A DNA stretch of 10,026 nt, taken from sequence record OP999027.1; one strand, given 5' to 3'. Within the stretch, counting starts at the first letter, position 1, and the number at the start of each line of letters is the position of its first letter. A program made the translations under genes and the position numbers. Positions 247 through 7,340 of this stretch are shown one piece after another. Under the pieces are notes generated by a model, which was given only the letters and a program-made list of their open reading frames with translations, did not search any database and was not told the origin of the DNA.

Positions 247-266
247 TACAATAAGCTCTTATGATG
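116..266 (+). ncRNA. Putative TnpB omegaRNA (reRNA): scaffold to about 246, guide about 247-266
   Basis: Stems GAGCC116-120/GGCTC132-136, GGGCC142-146/GGCCC197-201, CCTTACG153-159/CGTAAGG186-192, CACCCC204-209/GGGGTG221-226. ATGAACC180-186 is complementary to GGTTCAT240-246 (pseudoknot geometry). The 5' boundary is uncertain. Confidence 0.7.
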
Positions 267-1242
267 CACTATTATCTTTTTCTAACTTCTCCTTCTTCTC
301 CTTTGCCTCATCCTTCATCTTTTCGATTGCATTTACTACATTCATAATCTCATCGGCATCGGCACCGCTTTTAATGCCTAATTTTATGACCTCTAGTTTA
401 GTATTGACGAGGCGCGCATGTGAATCATTTCTTTCTTTTTTCCCCTCTAGTTCTTTCAACTCCTTTTGTAAGTTATCAAGTGATTCAACAATTTCGTTTA
501 TATGTTTTTCTTTTGGCGCGTCTTGATTTTTCTCTTCATCCTTAGTCTCGTCAATTTTTATGTCGCCCGCTTCAACCTTTTTTAGATACAAAATTAACGC
601 AACGCGAAAAACCGTAGACATCGAAAATCCGTTCTTATGAACGTAGTTAAGGAAACGTCTCTTAAGGTCCCATGGTATCATTGACCTAACGACTATATTT
701 CCCTTATACAATTCATCCTTATTTTCTATCTTATCCTTAATTATATAAGCAAGATCAAGGTGCCCATAATGGTCTAAAAACCACTTTATTACGTCAGGTA
801 TGATGTCCTTAATATTCTTTGGGGTAAATTGTACTATATTGGTAAGCTTTCTATATAGCTCATTACTGATGGAAAAATCAATTTCCACCTTCTCATCCTT
901 TCTCATAGTAACATCGTAAAGATAATCGGTAAGTGCTGCAAAAACAACTAAATCTCGAGAGCTCACTTTATTCTTTTCTACATACTCGTTTAGCATCTTT
1001 ACCATATCGTCTGACAATGAAACAGTAATTATATCCTCAAGCGGTGGTGAATTAGCAGTCAGCTTTTGTTCTAACTTCTTTATTTCCCGTAGCACCGCCC
1101 TGAAGCTTTCATTTTTATGCTTATCAAAAAATATCGATAAGGCCCTAGTGACTATTAGATCTTGATTTTCATTTCGTTTTTCTTGTGCTTTTCTCATCAG
1201 CTCTACTAAACCACGTGGTAATCTAAATGTCAAGTAAGGCAA
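259..1242 (-). CDS. Protein with four tandem ribbon-helix-helix (RHH) domains and a C-terminal coiled coil (~327 aa)
   Basis: RHH-like units: YLTFRLPRGLVELMRKAQEKRNENQDLIVTRALSIFF; IITVSLSDDMVKMLNEYVEKNKVSSRDLVVFAALTDYL; VEIDFSISNELYRKLTNIVQFTPKNIKDIIPDVIKWFL; IVVRSMIPWDLKRRFLNYVHKNGFSMSTVFRVALILYL. Start re-called to TTG 1242 (AGGTGG RBS, directly after the upstream stop at 1253); the ORF track extends it to 1317. Confidence 0.82.
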   Translation of the reverse strand: MPYLTFRLPRGLVELMRKAQEKRNENQDLIVTRALSIFFDKHKNESFRAVLREIKKLEQKLTANSPPLEDIITVSLSDDMVKMLNEYVEKNKVSSRDLVVFAALTDYLYDVTMRKDEKVEIDFSISNELYRKLTNIVQFTPKNIKDIIPDVIKWFLDHYGHLDLAYIIKDKIENKDELYKGNIVVRSMIPWDLKRRFLNYVHKNGFSMSTVFRVALILYLKKVEAGDIKIDETKDEEKNQDAPKEKHINEIVESLDNLQKELKELEGKKERNDSHARLVNTKLEVIKLGIKSGADADEIMNVVNAIEKMKDEAKEKKEKLEKDNSAS

Positions 1243-1252
1243 GATGGGCCAC

Positions 1253-2062
1253 CTATGTAGCGAACAGATAATTTTCAGTCTTTGAGGCCGGTGCTGCAAG
1301 CCGCAGAGCCAATTCATCCTTATGCTTTATAGCGAAGATTTTAGACTTTCCGCTGCGTATCTGATCTTGATATGTTTTGCTCAATTCTTCTGCATAACTC
1401 TTTAACACAGCTTCTATATCATTATTATAATCAGCCAGGCTAACTTTCTTTTCCTCAAAAAACCAATTATTGCTTCCTAACATACCAGCAGCAACTAAGT
1501 CCATTTTCGTATCTGCATAAAATACGTCAGCTTCGATAAACGTATCATTACCGTCTATAGGTATAGTGTATCTTTTTAGCTTCTTCATCGCCGTATTTAT
1601 CATATTCATCTTAACCTCCTTATCATGCTCAACATAAGCCAAAGGATCATAGGTAAAGCCAGCTCTTTCGATAAAGTCATTGAAGACATAAATTAGTGGG
1701 GATAAGCCAGACATTATTATTATCAATAGCCTATCTTTAGCCGCATCTAGGTCAAACAAATACTCGCTGTTATGATCGACATTTATTTCAAAAATGAAAG
1801 TGAACATTATTTTTAGTTTTTCTTTGTTGGCAGTGTTATATAGTCTAACACTTAGGTTTATCGCATATGTTGTTTGATTAATCTTTGATATATCTTTCTT
1901 TATGCTAGCTATTTTATAGTTGTACAAGGCGAAAGGCAATAGGCCTTTCTTATATAGCGCGAGACTGTTTCTTAACACGTAGTGTACAAGATCTTCTAAA
2001 GTCTTTTCTTTTACCTTTAAGTGGAGTTGTGTTTTTTCGGGTTCGGATTGGATCTCAAACAT
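1253..2062 (-). CDS. Hypothetical protein (269 aa) with a probable single N-terminal RHH and an unassigned alpha/beta C-terminal region
   Basis: ATG with GGCGGT RBS downstream of a TATA box. QLHLKVKEKTLEDLVHYVLRNSLALYKKGLLPFALYNY aligns with RHH2 of the neighbouring protein (L..YV..N......L..F.AL..Y). Remainder not recognised. Confidence 0.75.
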   Translation of the reverse strand: MFEIQSEPEKTQLHLKVKEKTLEDLVHYVLRNSLALYKKGLLPFALYNYKIASIKKDISKINQTTYAINLSVRLYNTANKEKLKIMFTFIFEINVDHNSEYLFDLDAAKDRLLIIIMSGLSPLIYVFNDFIERAGFTYDPLAYVEHDKEVKMNMINTAMKKLKRYTIPIDGNDTFIEADVFYADTKMDLVAAGMLGSNNWFFEEKKVSLADYNNDIEAVLKSYAEELSKTYQDQIRSGKSKIFAIKHKDELALRLAAPASKTENYLFAT

Positions 2063-2233
2063 TTTACCGCCGATTATTACTGTAGTTATTTAAGCTTATA
2101 AAACTTTCTATCATGAGCTTCATAGCCAAATACGTAAAATTACGTGTTAACATAACAGTATAGTCACAAAAACATAAGGGGAAAAAGGGACTTCACCAAA
2201 ATTGTAGAACTGACATTACAATTCTGTAATTTT
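2060..2233 (-). promoter_or_regulatory. Intergenic cassette copy 1: oligo-T terminator, 36-bp inverted repeat, 14-bp palindrome, BRE/TATA, leader
   Basis: Minus strand GAAAG-TTTTATAAG (2095-2108) is a BRE+TATA. Perfect palindrome ACGTAA-AA-TTACGT 2132-2145; IR AAAATTGTAGAA-N12-TTCTGTAATTTT 2198-2233. About 80% identical by hand to 7197-7340. Confidence 0.8.
2178..2190 (-). terminator. Pyrimidine/oligo-T terminator candidate for the RHH operon ending at 2243
   Basis: Minus strand TCCCTTTTTCCCC about 55 nt after the stop codon; same relative position as the T7 tracts in cassette copies 2 and 3. Confidence 0.5.
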
Positions 2234-2242
2234 ACCAAAAAT

Positions 2243-3487
2243 TTACAAGAGTAGAATTTTAACATTATCTTTATCGATTTCCTTTAGGTAACCGTGATTC
2301 TTAAATGATTCGAACAACTCCGTTGTATTTCTGACAGATTTTATTTTCTTCATCGCGTCTTGGATATCTTGCTTCTTTACTACTGTTCCTTTTTTTAGCC
2401 CAGGATAAAGGCCCGTCTTTAAATCTTCCAAAATTCTTTGCCATACTACGTAAGTTTTAATATCAGACTTTCCAGAGAATCGTTTCTTTGTCCATTGTCT
2501 CAATATTTTTGCTATAATTTTGCCAACTTCAAGCTTAATCGCACTTTCATTAACGCTTAGCTTATAACCATGATGATACCTAAGTATGACATATTCTTTT
2601 AGCAAGTTATAAAGTCGTCCTGATAATGGTACACTGACAAAACGACTTGCACGTCTAGGTTTGGGTTTATTATTTTGTTTCGGTGGGTCATTAGGTGGGT
2701 CATTTGCTTCTTCATTTTGTATAACCTTCTGTTGTTCTGCAGTACTTCCATTCAGCAAATTCAAATGATTCATAATTGCGAGGCGAATAATAGCGCCTTT
2801 AGAAACTAGCGTCTGTTCCGAAATTTTTTCTAATTGTAGTAAAACGCGTATAGGCAACTTTATAGGGAGCTCTTTTTGAGGACCCTTTCCAGAAAATAAG
2901 TTGCTAGCAGTCTCGTGCAGCCTTTTGATTTCCTCAGAGTTATCATCATATTTTTTCAAAAACTCATCAATAGCCTCCCTTATAAGGTCACTTATTGTTA
3001 TGCGTTTTTTTATTACTTCATTCTCAAGGAGTTTGTGTAACTCGTTACTATACTTAAAGCTTGTCTGAACCAACACGTTAAGATCTCCGAAATCTGAAGC
3101 CTCTTGTAGTTTCGTTTTATGCCTTAGCTCATCCCTAGCTCTAGACAATATTTCTTTTACTTTTTCTATATAAGGCCTTTTCTGTCTATCATCAAGATTA
3201 AGGAAGTTATTTATCATGCTCCAAACTATTCTCATAATCGAAAATCCTCTTGAGTTGACATAAATGCGGATCTTCTCCATAGCATCTTCTGGTAATGTTA
3301 AAGAAATTCTTTTTAACTCTTCTTTATTATAATTGGGTGGTAGTGATTCTATAGAGTCTGAAGGATTTTCGGCAAATGCAATAATAGCCGCCCTCATCAA
3401 AAGCCCACCAGGTACACCAAGCCGTTCTGCCTCTTCTACTACTTTATCTAATAATGTTTCAGGAATGATGAAGGTCAGAGACTTCAT
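2243..3487 (-). CDS. Multi-RHH protein (four clear RHH, a possible fifth) with Pro-rich linker and C-terminal winged-helix-like domain (~414 aa)
   Basis: RHH units start at SLTFIIP, RISLTLP, QTSFKYS, ELPIKLP, and possibly FVSVPLS. The C-terminus KKQDIQDAMKKIKSVRNTTELFESFKNHGYLKEIDKDNVKIL has a helix-helix-beta-hairpin wHTH pattern. The first ~250 aa are collinear with the 270-aa neighbour. ATG 3487 preferred over GTG 3496. Confidence 0.85.
   Translation of the reverse strand: MKSLTFIIPETLLDKVVEEAERLGVPGGLLMRAAIIAFAENPSDSIESLPPNYNKEELKRISLTLPEDAMEKIRIYVNSRGFSIMRIVWSMINNFLNLDDRQKRPYIEKVKEILSRARDELRHKTKLQEASDFGDLNVLVQTSFKYSNELHKLLENEVIKKRITISDLIREAIDEFLKKYDDNSEEIKRLHETASNLFSGKGPQKELPIKLPIRVLLQLEKISEQTLVSKGAIIRLAIMNHLNLLNGSTAEQQKVIQNEEANDPPNDPPKQNNKPKPRRASRFVSVPLSGRLYNLLKEYVILRYHHGYKLSVNESAIKLEVGKIIAKILRQWTKKRFSGKSDIKTYVVWQRILEDLKTGLYPGLKKGTVVKKQDIQDAMKKIKSVRNTTELFESFKNHGYLKEIDKDNVKILLL
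2682..2704. repeat. 11-bp direct repeat (period 12) encoding NDPP-NDPP in the linker
   Basis: GGTGGGTCATT at 2682-2692 and 2694-2704. Confidence 0.8.
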
Positions 3488-3492
3488 TCTTA

Positions 3493-4305
3493 TCACGCTA
3501 CCAGTGTTGTGTTTGCTTTGCTAACACTTTGCATAACCTCTTGATGTACGTCAACCAAGTTCAGATATCTCACAATTGCAAGGCGAATGAGCATAGCCCT
3601 AGACACATTAATCTTATCAGCTATTTTAGTTAGCTGTAATAGCATATATGCAGGCACTTTTAAGGAACAATCCTTAGCCGAAACTTCGATATAATACAGA
3701 TGTTTAGCAGCCTCATATAGCTTTTCGATTTTCTCAAAGTTATTACCATATTTCTGCAAAAGATCATCAATAGCCCTTCTTACAAGTTCACTTGCCGTTA
3801 TTCCTCTTTCACGTACCTCTTTTGCAAGTAGTTTACGTAAGTCATCTAGACATCTAAAACTTATTGGAACCAGCCGATAAGGTTCTTTTGAAGCAATATT
3901 TTCCAGTAATTGAAGCGAATGCTCTTTGTCTCGTTTTCTCTTTCTCTTCTCTGTTATCTTTCTTACCTCTTTTTTGATATAGATTAGTTTTTGCTCATCA
4001 CTTAAATTAAGAAAATCGGCTACCGTCCTCTCCGCTACTTTTCTCGCCGGAAGGCCTTTTGCAGCAGCGTAAGAATAAATTTTTTCTAAAGTGTCTTTTT
4101 GCAATGCTAAACAAACTTTTGTTATTTCTTTTCGTCCAGACCCGCCGATTGCGTTTGGTAATGGTTTTATAGAGTCTGGCGGGTTTTCTGCAAACGTCTG
4201 AATTGCAGCACTCAGCAAAAGTGTTCGTTTTACATTAAAACGCGACGCTTCTTCATTTACCTTGTTAAGTAAAGAGATACGTATTGAAAAGCATAAATAT
4301 GCCAT
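3493..4305 (-). CDS. Four-RHH protein (~270 aa), paralog of the N-terminal part of the 414-aa protein
   Basis: RHH units at YLCFSIR, KVCLALQ, PISFRCL, CSLKVPA. Motifs shared with the neighbour include FAENP.DSI..LP, FLNL.D.QK..YI, LLQL.KI and IRLAI...LNL. ATG 4305 follows GGGTGA RBS (track start GTG 4314). Confidence 0.87.
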   Translation of the reverse strand: MAYLCFSIRISLLNKVNEEASRFNVKRTLLLSAAIQTFAENPPDSIKPLPNAIGGSGRKEITKVCLALQKDTLEKIYSYAAAKGLPARKVAERTVADFLNLSDEQKLIYIKKEVRKITEKRKRKRDKEHSLQLLENIASKEPYRLVPISFRCLDDLRKLLAKEVRERGITASELVRRAIDDLLQKYGNNFEKIEKLYEAAKHLYYIEVSAKDCSLKVPAYMLLQLTKIADKINVSRAMLIRLAIVRYLNLVDVHQEVMQSVSKANTTLVA

Positions 4306-4316
4306 TTTTATCACCC

Positions 4317-4637
4317 TTACACTAGCTTGAAATAGGCTGCTAATGCAGTCCGTATGAGGTCGCTCTTATTCGTTCTTATTTTTTCTGCTACAATATCTAG
4401 CTGAGTGTTGAGACTCTCAGGAAGCCTTATGGAAATTACGTACTTACCTGAATAGGGAGAAGTCTTTTTGCTTAACTCCATTATCTCATCATTATTATGC
4501 TGTAAAAGCCTCATCACTGCCTCCTTTATAATTGCGGTTTTTGTGGTGTTAGTTTTTTCAGCCTCTTCCTTTAGCTTTAAAATAAGGCTAGATGCACACT
4601 TGAAGCTTATCTGTTTTAAGGGTTCTTTCTCTAACAT
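4317..4637 (-). CDS. Two-RHH protein (106 aa), CopG/Arc-like single-chain tandem RHH
   Basis: KQISFKCASSLILKLKEEAEKTNTTKTAIIKEAVMRLL and YVISIRLPESLNTQLDIVAEKIRTNKSDLIRTALAAYF are both textbook RHH patterns. ATG 4637 with GGTGGT RBS (track start GTG 4655 lies in the leader). Confidence 0.9.
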   Translation of the reverse strand: MLEKEPLKQISFKCASSLILKLKEEAEKTNTTKTAIIKEAVMRLLQHNNDEIMELSKKTSPYSGKYVISIRLPESLNTQLDIVAEKIRTNKSDLIRTALAAYFKLV

Positions 4638-4790
4638 TTTACCACCAATTAACACTGTAGTTTTTCTAGATTAAAAAACTATCTATCATGAGTTACATAA
4701 AGAAAACCGTAAAATCTTGTGATATTATGAAACGATGATCACGTAAAATGATTGTTAAAAAAAGGAATTTGCCAAAATTGGTGAATTCTG
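4635..4790 (-). promoter_or_regulatory. Intergenic cassette copy 2 (distal inverted repeat truncated by the upstream gene end)
   Basis: TTAAAAAACTATCTATCATGA at 4671-4691 is identical to 7202-7222. CGTAAAAT, GAAACGAT, A7-GG (4757-4765) and CCAAAATTG are collinear with the other copies. Leader 4635-4662 matches 2060-2087 at 24/28. Confidence 0.75.
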
Positions 4791-4791
4791 T

Positions 4792-5364
4792 CTAGTTATT
4801 CATATTATCATTAATTTTCATTATAATATTCGCTATCGTTTTAAAGGCTAATTTGCCATAAGGATAAAGTTCGATTTGAATGTTTTTAGAAGCCTCATAA
4901 ACTATCTTGTAATGGTGTTTAGGCAAAACCGCAACTATTCTTTTATGGATATTGTGGGCATGAGAGAGTGCAATGGAAAGTAGTTTGATGAACTCTTGTT
5001 TTTCTTCTTCAGTCATCAAAGAAGGAGGATAATCATAAGAATTGAAAGGGTAACAGTTCTCTAATTCTCTAGGGACTAACAACATCGGCTCAGAGACAGA
5101 ATACACTTGAACCTTATCCTCAAGTTTATACTTTCGTAGCAAGGAATAAGCTAGTTTGTGTGTGGCTGACTTATTATAAGGCTTAACTGATGTACAAGGT
5201 AATAAAAGCGCTATTTCTTTTTTGGAATACCAGTTGTTGAGAAAGTACTCATGCCATTTTTTTACCACAGGATGTTGGAATGGGTCAAAGCCAGGCTTTT
5301 TTATTATTTTTTCGCCTGAGCCAAGATACTTCTCTAAGGGTTCACAGCCTTCTACATAACTCAT
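4792..5364 (-). CDS. Stand-alone ArcS-like catalytic domain (DUF5591-type; archaeosine synthase C1 region), no PUA domain
   Basis: PCTSVKPYNKSATH (aa 56-69, nt 5158-5199) matches the ArcS signature PCx3KPYx2Sx2H exactly; followed by VSEPMLLVPRELE..YP...YDYP, typical of this domain. Only 190 aa. Confidence 0.85.
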   Translation of the reverse strand: MSYVEGCEPLEKYLGSGEKIIKKPGFDPFQHPVVKKWHEYFLNNWYSKKEIALLLPCTSVKPYNKSATHKLAYSLLRKYKLEDKVQVYSVSEPMLLVPRELENCYPFNSYDYPPSLMTEEEKQEFIKLLSIALSHAHNIHKRIVAVLPKHHYKIVYEASKNIQIELYPYGKLAFKTIANIIMKINDNMNN

Positions 5365-6205
5365 TTATTTCCGCCTCTGGGTCTGTTATATTATGAGAGT
5401 ACTTAATAAGAGGGTGATCTGCCTCATACTCACTATGTAGCAAGACCCATACATTAATAAATGATCTATCTATCCAATTGTCAAACCTTATAGGAAATGG
5501 GTAGTGAGTCTTCTCTAGAAAGTCCTTAAGTGATTCAAGTTCATCTTCACTAATTCTTCTAGCACCCCAACTTATTTTTCTCTCTCCAACATACCTTTCT
5601 CCTTTTCCAGGCAATAACACCATACCATGTATTGCCTTTACTCTATAAGTTGATGTGTCAACACTATCAGCATCATAAAAAACCTTTCTCATGAAAGGAG
5701 AACCAGCACCTAAAACGTGAATTTTACCCTTCCATTCTTTTCTAACAAGGCGATACATCGCAACTGCTAGCTTTTGACTGGCTACCTTATTAAGAGATGG
5801 TGGAACTATCCCACCAAATGCGATATAATCCGTATATTGAGAGTAGAAATCAATAGCCTTTTTAATGCTTTCAACATCATAAGCGTGAATGACTGGTATT
5901 ATATTCTTATCCAGTTTCGTGTATAAGTACTCAAAATGCTTGAAATTAAGCTCTGAAGGCTTTTCGCAAGGTGTTGCAGGTATATCGAGACTAATGTAAT
6001 AGTCTGCATCAAGCCTCTTGTATTTATCTAATACGGCATCTACACTAATCTGCATTTTTTTAACCATTATTTGATAGCCACCAGAATCTACCCACGTTTC
6101 ATTTTCCCATTCTACAAAGTCCCACACAAGCTGATTAATCATCAGTGGTACACCTAACTCCCATAACTTCACCCTACTATCAGGCAAACCTAAAATAATC
6201 TTCAT
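5342..6205 (-). CDS. tRNA-guanine transglycosylase-fold protein, DpdA-like (candidate DNA 7-deazaguanine transglycosylase)
   Basis: TGT motifs DSGGYQ, SLDIP, PVIH, FGG, HVLGAGSP and DSVDTST, with both catalytic Asp positions present. No CxCxxC zinc site and no PUA domain; His where tRNA TGTs have QG. ATG 6205 preferred; the track start GTG 6247 overlaps the upstream gene. Confidence 0.85.
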   Translation of the reverse strand: MKIILGLPDSRVKLWELGVPLMINQLVWDFVEWENETWVDSGGYQIMVKKMQISVDAVLDKYKRLDADYYISLDIPATPCEKPSELNFKHFEYLYTKLDKNIIPVIHAYDVESIKKAIDFYSQYTDYIAFGGIVPPSLNKVASQKLAVAMYRLVRKEWKGKIHVLGAGSPFMRKVFYDADSVDTSTYRVKAIHGMVLLPGKGERYVGERKISWGARRISEDELESLKDFLEKTHYPFPIRFDNWIDRSFINVWVLLHSEYEADHPLIKYSHNITDPEAEINELCRRL

Positions 6206-6224: not shown

Positions 6225-6677
6225 CTATATGTTAAATACCATTTCACGTATGGTTTTGATTGTATTTCTTACAAATCTCGCCTTCTTCATCGTCAGTGGG
6301 GTCTGATTCAGTTTTAGCTGAAGATGCTGAATAAAGTAGAACATCAAGATTCTGTGAGCCTTTTTTGCCCTTTCATTTTCGTATTCCGGAACGACGTAAA
6401 CTACATTCAAGGCGAGTACATCTCTCCAGCTTTCTATGTGAACATACATCTGCAGAACTTCCTGGAGATGAATGAGATATTCCTGAATTTTCGTATTATC
6501 TTCTAATGTTCTCAAGATTTTTGCTAACATGTAGATGATCTCGTCCAATGTTGCATTCTCTGGATTCTCAATACCAAGCTCTTGCAAAAATTGGAGGCCT
6601 TCTTGATCTTGCGCCACTTCTTCCTTTATGCTCTCCCACGATTCGTTACTTAACCCCTCCGGAACGATATTTATCAT
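6225..6677 (-). CDS. Hypothetical all-alpha protein (150 aa), tandem paralog of 6693-7163
   Basis: Roughly half of residues identical to the neighbour by hand alignment (e.g. YVVP.Y..ERAKKAH..LMFY.IQ.LQ). Both are preceded by GG-rich RBS + AAAAAC-ATG-ATA. Confidence 0.85.
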   Translation of the reverse strand: MINIVPEGLSNESWESIKEEVAQDQEGLQFLQELGIENPENATLDEIIYMLAKILRTLEDNTKIQEYLIHLQEVLQMYVHIESWRDVLALNVVYVVPEYENERAKKAHRILMFYFIQHLQLKLNQTPLTMKKARFVRNTIKTIREMVFNI

Positions 6678-6692
6678 GTTTTTCTTACCCCC

Positions 6693-7163
6693 CTATCTAT
6701 TCTGCGTATTAAATATCATTTCACGCAAGCTTTCAATAAATTTATCTATAAACTCCATTTTTTCAGTAAATAATCCAGGTCCTTTTATAGGTTGTTGTAA
6801 GTACTGAATCAAGTAAAACATTAGTAACTTGTGTGCTTTTTTTGCTCTCTCGTCCTTATAGTCAGGTACGACGTAAATCATAGCCAACACATTATCCTCA
6901 TTCTGCCAATCCTCATTGAATTCTGAAACATACGTCTGTAATGATGCTTTCAATTGTATTATATATTTTGTTTTAGCTTCATCACTTTCTAAGGTATTTA
7001 ATAACTTCGCTATCATACGAACTATTTCATATCTTGTTGCCTCTGCAGGGTCCTCAAGACCTAGTTCTCTCAAATATTGTATAGCTTCTTTATCTTGTGC
7101 AACATTTTTCTTTATATATTCCCAGCTTATTTTACTTATTCCTTCTGGCACAATATCTATCAT
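6693..7163 (-). CDS. Hypothetical all-alpha protein (156 aa), first gene of the TGT/ArcS operon
   Basis: ATG with GGAGGTGG RBS directly downstream of cassette copy 3; paralogous to 6225-6677. Confidence 0.87.
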   Translation of the reverse strand: MIDIVPEGISKISWEYIKKNVAQDKEAIQYLRELGLEDPAEATRYEIVRMIAKLLNTLESDEAKTKYIIQLKASLQTYVSEFNEDWQNEDNVLAMIYVVPDYKDERAKKAHKLLMFYLIQYLQQPIKGPGLFTEKMEFIDKFIESLREMIFNTQNR

Positions 7164-7196: not shown

Positions 7197-7340
7197 TTAG
7201 CTTAAAAAACTATCTATCATGAACTCCATAGTCAAAAACGTAAAATTATGTGTTAACACGAAACGATAGTCAAAAAACTTGAGAGGAAAAAAAGGGGCTT
7301 CTCCAAAATTGTAGAACTATCATGACAATTCTACAAATTT
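7197..7340 (-). promoter_or_regulatory. Intergenic cassette copy 3
   Basis: 54/62 identity of 7197-7258 to 2091-2152 and 36/43 of 7298-7340 to 2191-2233. IR AAAATTGTAGAA(7305-7316)-N12-TTCTACAAATTT(7329-7340); near-palindrome ACGTAAAATTATGT 7238-7251; T7 tract (A7 on + at 7287-7293). Confidence 0.82.

Follow-up and report, generated by a model that had tools for sequence, protein, structure and literature searches.

The window analysed here, i.e. the whole stretch of 10,026 bp that makes up the contig in record OP999027.1, comes from Sulfolobus tengchongensis spindle-shaped virus 4 (STSV4), a virus that is incompletely assembled. It carries two overlapping genes that are labelled as hypothetical proteins in the STSV4 record and are not discussed in the STSV4 paper. 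One of them encodes a protein resembling tRNA-guanine transglycosylases (TGT), the other one a small protein of the ArcS type:

5342..6205, minus strand: DpdA-like guanine transglycosylase (open reading frame (ORF) 10, WDS52846.1), 287 aa, TGT-fold TIM barrel
4792..5364, minus strand: ArcS2 (ORF9, WDS52845.1), 190 aa, stand-alone ArcS C1/DUF5591 domain

It is likely that the pair constitutes a two-enzyme module that puts 7-deazaguanine into the double-stranded viral DNA after replication.

A sequence-only reading of this stretch had described a TGT-like gene that overlaps a 190-aa ArcS-type gene by 23 nt. This overlap is seen at positions 5342-5364, with the start of the ArcS2 gene lying inside it, it is kept in STSV2 and STSV1, and a comparable overlap is found in the hosts. 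The start codon of ORF10 is ATG 6205, as annotated in GenBank (5342-6205), and MKI or MKV stands at the matching position in all 33 of the 33 aligned family members. A GTG at position 6247 that resulted from the mechanical listing of ORFs was rejected as an artefact, and the gene upstream stops at 6225. Since ATG 6205 is the true start, the residue previously counted as Asp54 has to be renumbered as Asp40. Purifying selection acts on both genes, with ratios of nonsynonymous to synonymous substitution rates (dN/dS) of 0.07-0.11 among STSV1, STSV2 and STSV4. In agreement with the sequence-only reading, neither the ORF list nor a Pfam search revealed a queC, queD, queE or radical-SAM gene, RaSEA included, in the window.

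Judged by sequence, the two STSV4 genes are orthologues of STSV2_15/16 and of STSV1 ORF18/19. The TGT-like protein shares 94.8% of its amino acids with STSV2_15 and 94.4% with STSV1 ORF18, ArcS2 is about 93% identical to both STSV2_16 and STSV1 ORF19 at the amino acid level, and the nucleotide identity of STSV4 to STSV1 and STSV2 amounts to about 90-91% over the region and to 90-93% in both coding sequences. The pair was published as DpdA + ArcS in 2019 (PMC6884629), in a study in which Hutinet et al. listed DpdA-type genes from two Bicaudaviridae and twelve Ligamenvirales viruses. Cui et al. described in 2023 that STSV2 encodes DpdA and ArcS, the sole homologues that they report from this virus, found the ArcS motif to be conserved and renamed the enzyme ArcS2 (PMC10516641). 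The sequence-only reading had mentioned such a pair in STSV2, and this is correct. Since the STSV2 pair has already been published, the STSV4 pair is not new and represents the correct re-discovery of a known one. The virion DNA of STSV2 contains the deoxynucleoside of 7-carboxy-7-deazaguanine (dCDG) and not that of archaeosine (dG+), at 149 per 10^6 nt, equal to 0.04% of G or roughly 10-25 sites per genome (PMC10516641). The proposal of a deazaguanine DNA-modification module therefore matches the published description of proteins that are 94-95% identical, as well as the dCDG in STSV2 virion DNA.

The affiliation of the TGT-like protein with the TGT superfamily is indicated by profiles as well as by its fold. 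PHROG 887, named 'queuine tRNA-ribosyltransferase', matches the protein with an E-value of 1.9e-53. Its AlphaFold (AF2) model, which was built from a 33-sequence alignment, is a TIM barrel with a predicted local distance difference test score (pLDDT) of 90.7. Comparison of this model to the PDB with Foldseek gave the archaeal TGT (arcTGT) structures 1j2b/1iq8 as top matches (E 1e-10) and bacterial TGT (bTGT) next (E 2e-8). Among viral models, a rudivirus homologue was the top match (TM 0.88), followed by phage transglycosylases including proteins from Vibrio phage nt-1 and Cellulophaga phage phiST. A search of the PDB sequences with the single protein yielded noise only and a family profile was required to obtain a match; with this profile arcTGT was the sole match (E 3.8e-5), and both catalytic Asp motifs align. 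NCBIfam contributed only a weak match to arcTGT, with 20 bits at a cut-off of 350 (TIGR00432; 20-25 bits over the comparisons with this model), and PADLOC returned nothing for the protein.

Three aspartates are invariant in the 33 family sequences, namely D40 (WVDSGGYQ), D74 (SLDIP) and D183 (DSVDTSTY), and D40 and D183 align with D95 and D249 of arcTGT. The protein possesses just two cysteines, C80 and C284, so that a Cys3His zinc site (CxCxxC...H) is impossible, and the family alignment contains no conserved Cys cluster. Neither a PUA domain nor any other Pfam domain was detected in the protein, and its 287 aa leave no room for a PUA. Alignment, model, Foldseek and Pfam thus bear out the earlier picture of a TGT barrel with intact catalytic Asp residues but no zinc site and no PUA. 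The placement of the protein relative to the DpdA, arcTGT and bTGT groups, for which we relied on comparisons of hidden Markov models (HMMs) and folds, turned out differently in one respect: membership in the TGT superfamily was confirmed, whereas the nearest characterised protein in terms of both profile and fold is arcTGT and not bacterial DpdA. For bacterial DpdA, the statement that DpdA lacks the zinc motif is wrong, since the crystal structure of Salmonella DpdA contains a CXCX2CX22H zinc site that is conserved in the family (PMC10164549). In a search of 1.84 billion proteins, each of the 150 top-ranking relatives was a short protein that consists of the TGT part only, and a scan of IMG/VR produced matches in STSV1, STSV2 and rudiviruses only. 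The idea that ArcS has been split and that the TGT-like protein is just its inactive N-terminal part was rejected, since the protein matches the arcTGT model, never the ArcS model, and keeps all catalytic Asp residues.

The second protein is matched by Pfam DUF5591 (E 3.4e-20), by the NCBIfam ArcS model NF040592 (E 6.9e-21) and also by the uncharacterised PDB entry 2q07. It covers positions 274-408 of the 575 positions of the ArcS model, i.e. the C1 core only, and reaches 74.5 bits at a cut-off of 440. Due to this restricted coverage and the score below the cut-off, it has to be regarded as ArcS2, a stand-alone C1 domain, and not as canonical ArcS. The motif PCx3KPYx2Sx2H is exactly present (P56-C57-TSV-K61-P62-Y63-NK-S66-AT-H69), and PC...KPY, SEP and several more residues are invariant in 20 ArcS2 homologues. 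The description of a 190-aa protein with the exact ArcS motif and no PUA therefore stands.

From these assignments the following mechanism can be envisaged. Following TGT chemistry, the TGT-like enzyme would flip out selected guanines and exchange them for a free 7-deazaguanine from the host pool, either 7-cyano-7-deazaguanine (preQ0) or possibly CDG. In this double-displacement reaction D183 would serve as nucleophile, D40 as general acid/base and D74 in reading of the base. The stand-alone ArcS C1 domain would then modify the inserted base at its nitrile. The ArcS protein from T. kodakarensis is a lysine transferase that is active on the bare preQ0 nucleoside and does not need the tRNA structure, and lysine transfer by ArcS blocks the reverse exchange by the transglycosylase (PMC11298593). 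Likewise, the product of ArcS2 would no longer be exchangeable by the transglycosylase, and this provides a rationale for the pairing of both enzymes. In the absence of RaSEA, the primary product might be a preQ0-lysine amidine or products of its hydrolysis, and dCDG could arise by hydrolysis of the preQ0-lysine adduct at 75-80 °C. The modification may serve to shield the viral DNA from host nucleases that read the mark or its absence. The anti-restriction role put forward in the sequence-only reading is likewise a hypothesis, and the level found in STSV2 is very low.

The published mass balance of the nt-1 experiment is of special relevance here, as addition of ArcS removed 926-1607 dPreQ0 (the deoxynucleoside of preQ0) per 10^6 nt, while no more than 4-7 dG+ appeared (Table 3 in PMC10516641). 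Since the loss of dPreQ0 is far above the gain of dG+, most of the product must lie outside the measured species. By analogy to the lysine-transferase activity of ArcS, a preQ0-lysine adduct is a plausible candidate for the missing nt-1 product.

Several observations weigh against a role of the pair in DNA modification. The TGT-like protein is matched neither by a Pfam family (TGT included) nor, at E<=0.01, by the NCBIfam DpdA model (NF041059). It lacks the zinc site that is conserved in bacterial DpdA (bDpdA), arcTGT and bTGT, and in the sequences compared it is this absence that separates the TGT-like clade from all three of them alike. Its closest solved relative, arcTGT, acts on tRNA, and DNA as the substrate of the clade is presumed by analogy. 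Furthermore, the deazaguanine measurement covers STSV2 virion DNA only, the modification is rare even there, and dCDG is predicted from neither enzyme. The supply of the base is in question as well, since S. tengchongensis is reported to be devoid of preQ0 synthesis genes, and the authors of the STSV2 study did not settle where the base comes from or how dCDG is formed (PMC10516641). The tRNA of both S. acidocaldarius and Sulfurisphaera tokodaii contains archaeosine (G+; PMC7668247, PMC11298593), which implies that Sulfolobales in general make preQ0. The corresponding claim of the sequence-only reading consequently holds for these two species but, according to the STSV2 study, not for S. tengchongensis, which is stated there to lack the pathway.

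The pair is evidently of host origin. A search of 5.8 billion proteins revealed close homologues on Sulfolobales chromosomes, including that of S. tengchongensis itself (CP146016.1), where the TGT-like gene overlaps the DUF5591 gene as in the virus. The viral and the S. tengchongensis proteins share 69-71% (TGT-like) and about 65% (ArcS2) aligned amino acid identity. In a maximum-likelihood tree the STSV transglycosylase clade is nested within a chromosomal clade of Saccharolobus, Sulfolobus and Aramenus (support 100/99), and in the corresponding ArcS2 tree the protein of S. tengchongensis branches as sister of the STSV clade (88/82). Judged from these sequences, both genes were evidently captured as a unit from the chromosome of a Sulfolobaceae host. 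The rudivirus TGT-like homologues form a long branch within the same Sulfolobales clade and occur without ArcS2.

Rudivirus-type TGT-like genes were also encountered in bacterial assemblies from Planomonospora, Streptomyces gamaensis, Paenochrobactrum and Nocardioides (survey loci L040, L039, L059 and L060). The tested stretch of the Planomonospora alba JCM 9373 contig (L040, 31,951 bp) shares 99.5% identity with Sulfolobus islandicus rudivirus 3. The genes in these assemblies are almost certainly contamination, and contamination with rudivirus contigs explains the protein name 'MULTISPECIES [Bacteria]'.

In the cellular genomes, for which one genome per species was scanned and 63 loci were then surveyed locally with HMMs, the pair is found in a recurrent context. 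In S. tengchongensis (L004 11736-18144), Saccharolobus caldissimus, Sulfuracidifex and Acidianus it is followed by four genes on the same strand, which encode a DUF87/HerA-like ATPase, a protein of about 1010 aa, a protein of about 230 aa and a NurA-domain protein. This colinear six-gene block exists in 8 species-level loci of the Sulfolobales (for the cluster see also L007, L008, L010, L017-L020, L046 and L015). A HerA-like gene lies at most 10 kb away from the pair in 13 of 19 cellular TGT+ArcS2 loci, in about 4 arrangements. The order is ArcS2-TGT...HerA-large protein in Conexivisphaera and likewise in one mis-binned contig, and TGT-ArcS2-NurA-HerA-1478 aa (AAA_22) in a metagenome-assembled genome (MAG) of the Desulfurococcales, while in Njordarchaeia NurA-HerA-1450 aa are divergent from TGT-ArcS2. 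A fifth arrangement is present in Thermoproteales, where the TGT-like gene adjoins a HerA-like gene and ArcS2 is missing. In the Ignisphaera group the TGT-like gene stands alone, and Sulfurisphaera, Stygiolobus and Aramenus possess the pair without HerA or NurA nearby. As the whole region is syntenic within the Sulfolobales, the eight loci are not independent, and the signal consists in the differing arrangements in distant lineages.

The cluster does not represent the herA-mre11-rad50-nurA repair operon, since the gene order differs, Mre11/Rad50 signatures are missing and the HerA-like protein scores 103 bits with the canonical HerA model, far below the cut-off of 800. The N-terminus of the protein of about 1010 aa folds as an AAA+ ATPase of the ORC/Cdc6/Hda type, in a model of moderate quality (pLDDT 73). 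Radical-SAM genes close to the cellular homologues were considered as candidates for RaSEA and rejected, as they encode a TIGR04084 SPASM protein and the tetraether lipid synthase Tes. Only the generic HerA model of PADLOC matches the cellular cluster, and no description of an archaeal TGT-like/ArcS2/HerA/NurA/AAA+ cluster was found in the searchable literature. Two further loci deserve mention. In Sulfurisphaera ohwakuensis (L005 8111-10894) the genes for the TGT-like protein and ArcS2 are split and divergent, with a TnpB/Cas12f-like gene between them and without HerA or NurA nearby. A contig labelled as Thermogutta sp. MAG (Planctomycetota; L023) carries an archaeal-type ArcS2-TGT-HerA-large-protein cluster that is closest to that of Conexivisphaera, and this contig is probably a mis-binned archaeal one.

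According to a published proposal (PMC12839542), a defence that marks self DNA with deazaguanine combines a TGT with a HerA/FtsK translocase, an AAA+/STAND NTPase and a nuclease. The recurrent linkage in the archaeal genomes suggests, at the level of gene content, a deazaguanine-marking defence system that is possibly mimicked by the virus. This would extend the reading as a DNA-modification module: the viral pair would be a copy of the self-marking arm of the chromosomal HerA/NurA/AAA+ system of Sulfolobales, by which the virus marks its own DNA in the way the host marks itself and thereby escapes the HerA/NurA effector, so that the pair would be no general device against restriction. We regard this extension as possible but tentative. 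The host pair with the same overlap and four colinear genes behind it, the six-gene block in 8 loci, the additional arrangements outside the Sulfolobales, the distance of the HerA-like protein from repair HerA, the AAA+ fold of the large protein and the similarity to the proposed defence set all speak for it, and the low modification density in STSV2, which resembles that of restriction-modification systems, fits a site-specific marking. However, the block region is syntenic on both sides across four Sulfolobales genera, so that the adjacency of the genes might have been inherited and not selected, and the block resembles core genome and not a mobile defence island. The three genera with the pair but without HerA/NurA nearby and the restriction of PADLOC matches to generic HerA also speak against mimicry. 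Moreover, the HerA-like ATPase could be a DpdB-like helper for base insertion, and both deazaguanine in the chromosomal DNA of Sulfolobales and protection against viruses or plasmids are predictions.

One step further, the self-marking arm could have been captured from a so far undescribed archaeal defence system, with a preQ0-lysine adduct in DNA as perhaps the true product of DpdA+ArcS2 when RaSEA is missing, a combination that we consider conceivable, though rather doubtful. Under this joint reading, dCDG in STSV2 and the traces of dG+ in nt-1 may be breakdown or side products, and the adduct may have been outside the scope of the published targeted liquid chromatography-mass spectrometry.

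A quite different explanation would be that the pair is a minimal crenarchaeal system of the archaeosine type that acts on tRNA, with the virus tuning host or translation-related RNA. The nearest profile and fold matches to arcTGT and the syntenic chromosomal location that the cellular homologues keep in many Sulfolobales would be in line with this. By its title, an article of Sabina and Soll from 2006 is said to find the PUA domain dispensable for archaeosine formation. In addition, canonical ArcS is missing from most Crenarchaeota (PMC5485725, PMC11298593). We nevertheless consider a tRNA-directed function improbable. The 7-deazaguanine was found in virion DNA of STSV2, from which the authors of that study report no other TGT homologue than that of the pair. 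The scores with the arcTGT model remain at 20-25 bits, neither the zinc site nor any tRNA-binding domain is present, the best 150 relatives are without exception short, TGT-only proteins, and the viral fold matches include the phage transglycosylases of nt-1 and phiST. There are also no tRNA genes within the window, and the neighbours of the pair in cells are DNA enzymes (HerA-like ATPase, NurA-like nuclease). Finally, it is very unlikely that both are decaying passenger genes of host origin that are functionless in STSV4, with the trace of dCDG in STSV2 being incidental, as one might suppose from the very low modification, the unexpected product and the lack of deazaguanine synthesis genes, because the low dN/dS in three viruses, the intact catalytic residues and full ArcS motif and the kept overlap contradict such a decay.

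Further features in the surroundings of the module are:

6225..6677, minus strand: ORF11, 150 aa, function unassigned, its end lies 19 nt before the start of the transglycosylase gene
6693..7163, minus strand: ORF12, 156 aa, function unassigned, paralogue of ORF11 and first gene of the putative operon
7202..7221, minus strand: 20-nt candidate promoter motif CATGATAGATAGTTTTTTAA, TATA box at its 3' end, about 40 nt upstream of ORF12
4671-4690 and 2096-2115, minus strand: further identical or near-identical copies of the motif, ahead of the next two transcription units
4757..4763, minus strand: run of seven T, putative archaeal terminator, 29 nt downstream of the ArcS2 stop codon
7463-8236, minus strand: ThyX flavin-dependent thymidylate synthase (Pfam Thy1, E 5e-67), upstream of the module

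The 20-nt motif with the consensus CATGATAGA(T/A)AGTTTT(T/A)TAA occurs three times in the window, whereas 0.01 matches are expected, and in STSV1 it coincides exactly with the TATA boxes annotated by the depositors. Possibly it acts as a common viral promoter or as a binding element for a regulator. A sigma-70 promoter scan was discarded as inapplicable to an archaeal virus. From this arrangement we infer a four-gene operon that would extend from the motif at 7202-7221 over ORF12, ORF11, the transglycosylase gene and the ArcS2 gene to the T7 run at 4757-4763. The pair would thus form the distal half of an operon under a conserved viral TATA motif, with translational coupling via the 23-nt overlap. 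ORF11 is probably co-transcribed with the transglycosylase gene. ORF11 and ORF12 are tandem paralogues (50% identical) without any Pfam or PHROG match. Their family is confined to STSV4 (two copies) and STSV1 (one copy), with none in STSV2, and they are therefore not essential partners; they were rejected as partners of the module, as they are missing from both STSV2 and the cellular clusters. A TATA motif lies between thyX and the module in STSV4 and STSV1, whereas none separates them in STSV2, where thyX and the module may, on this layout, be co-transcribed. At 259-4655 on the minus strand, ORF2, ORF5, ORF6 and ORF7 form a run of four genes for multi-copy ribbon-helix-helix (CopG/Arc-like) proteins, which corresponds to the expanded ORF20-24 family of STSV1 and STSV2.

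Through their published orthologues, two STSV4 'hypothetical proteins' can now be given names. The origin from a host and the linkage to HerA/NurA/AAA+ genes provide a new context for this known pair. Since S. tengchongensis encodes a pair with 65-71% identity, the assertion that related genes are missing from the host needs to be revisited. Three puzzles of STSV2 become testable, namely the source of the deazaguanine, the occurrence of dCDG rather than dG+, and the purpose of the mark. The published mass balance and the lysine-transferase chemistry of ArcS point to a lysine adduct outside the species measured, and the linkage in cells suggests an archaeal counterpart of deazaguanine-based restriction-modification. 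If true, Archaea would have their first known system that tells self from non-self by deazaguanine, with a virus mimicking the host mark.

Among the known systems, STSV2_15/16 and STSV1 ORF18/19 resemble the STSV4 pair in gene order, overlap, ArcS motif and the upstream position of thyX. Differences concern the small upstream ORFs, of which STSV4 has two paralogues and STSV1 one, while STSV2 has an unrelated ORF of 80 aa, and the TATA motif behind thyX, which is present in STSV4 and STSV1 only. Bacterial DpdA, as known from Salmonella Montevideo (PMC10164549), shares with the STSV4 protein the TGT-type TIM barrel, the absence of a PUA and the three Asp residues, which are equivalent to D95/D130/D256. 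However, it possesses the CXCX2CX22H zinc site and a large insertion (Ins8), neither of which is present in the STSV4 protein, and the latter has 287 aa compared to a length of 406 for the DpdA model. The Dpd system genes dpdB (encoding a ParB-like ATPase), dpdC and dpdD-K are found neither in the window nor in the flanks of the pair in STSV1 and STSV2, and the cellular clusters carry HerA/NurA/AAA+ genes in their place.

In comparison to arcTGT of P. horikoshii (1IQ8/1J2B), the best solved match by profile and fold, with which the DSGxxQ and D-x-x-D-S...Y motifs align, the viral protein has half the length and is devoid of the zinc site, the C-terminal domains and the PUA. Canonical ArcS from T. 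kodakarensis (PMC11298593) has the C1/DUF5591 core and PCx3KPYx2Sx2H in common with ArcS2 of STSV4. However, it consists of an N-terminal TGT-like domain, C1, C2 and PUA, whereas the viral protein is C1 only. It furthermore works with RaSEA, for which there is no gene in the 10-kb window of the incompletely assembled STSV4.

Vibrio phage nt-1 with DpdA2 and ArcS(2) is similar to STSV4 in that a transglycosylase and a stand-alone ArcS core occur together in a virus (PMC10516641). The nt-1 pair is the sole one of this kind that has been tested experimentally, and dPreQ0 was inserted and then consumed on addition of ArcS (PMC10516641). Unlike STSV4, nt-1 has its own preQ0 pathway and a degenerate ArcS motif, and it is bacterial and mesophilic. 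Its transglycosylase (464 aa) belongs to another subfamily (fold E 1.3e-8 to the STSV4 protein). The archaeal cellular cluster, finally, can be compared to the BRC systems (PMC12839542). It differs from them by the absence of PglZ, of the BrxC-like DUF6079, of DUF4007 and of GNAT, by the NurA-like type of its nuclease and by the additional ArcS2, but both share a HerA-type translocase, an AAA+/STAND NTPase, a nuclease and a TGT.

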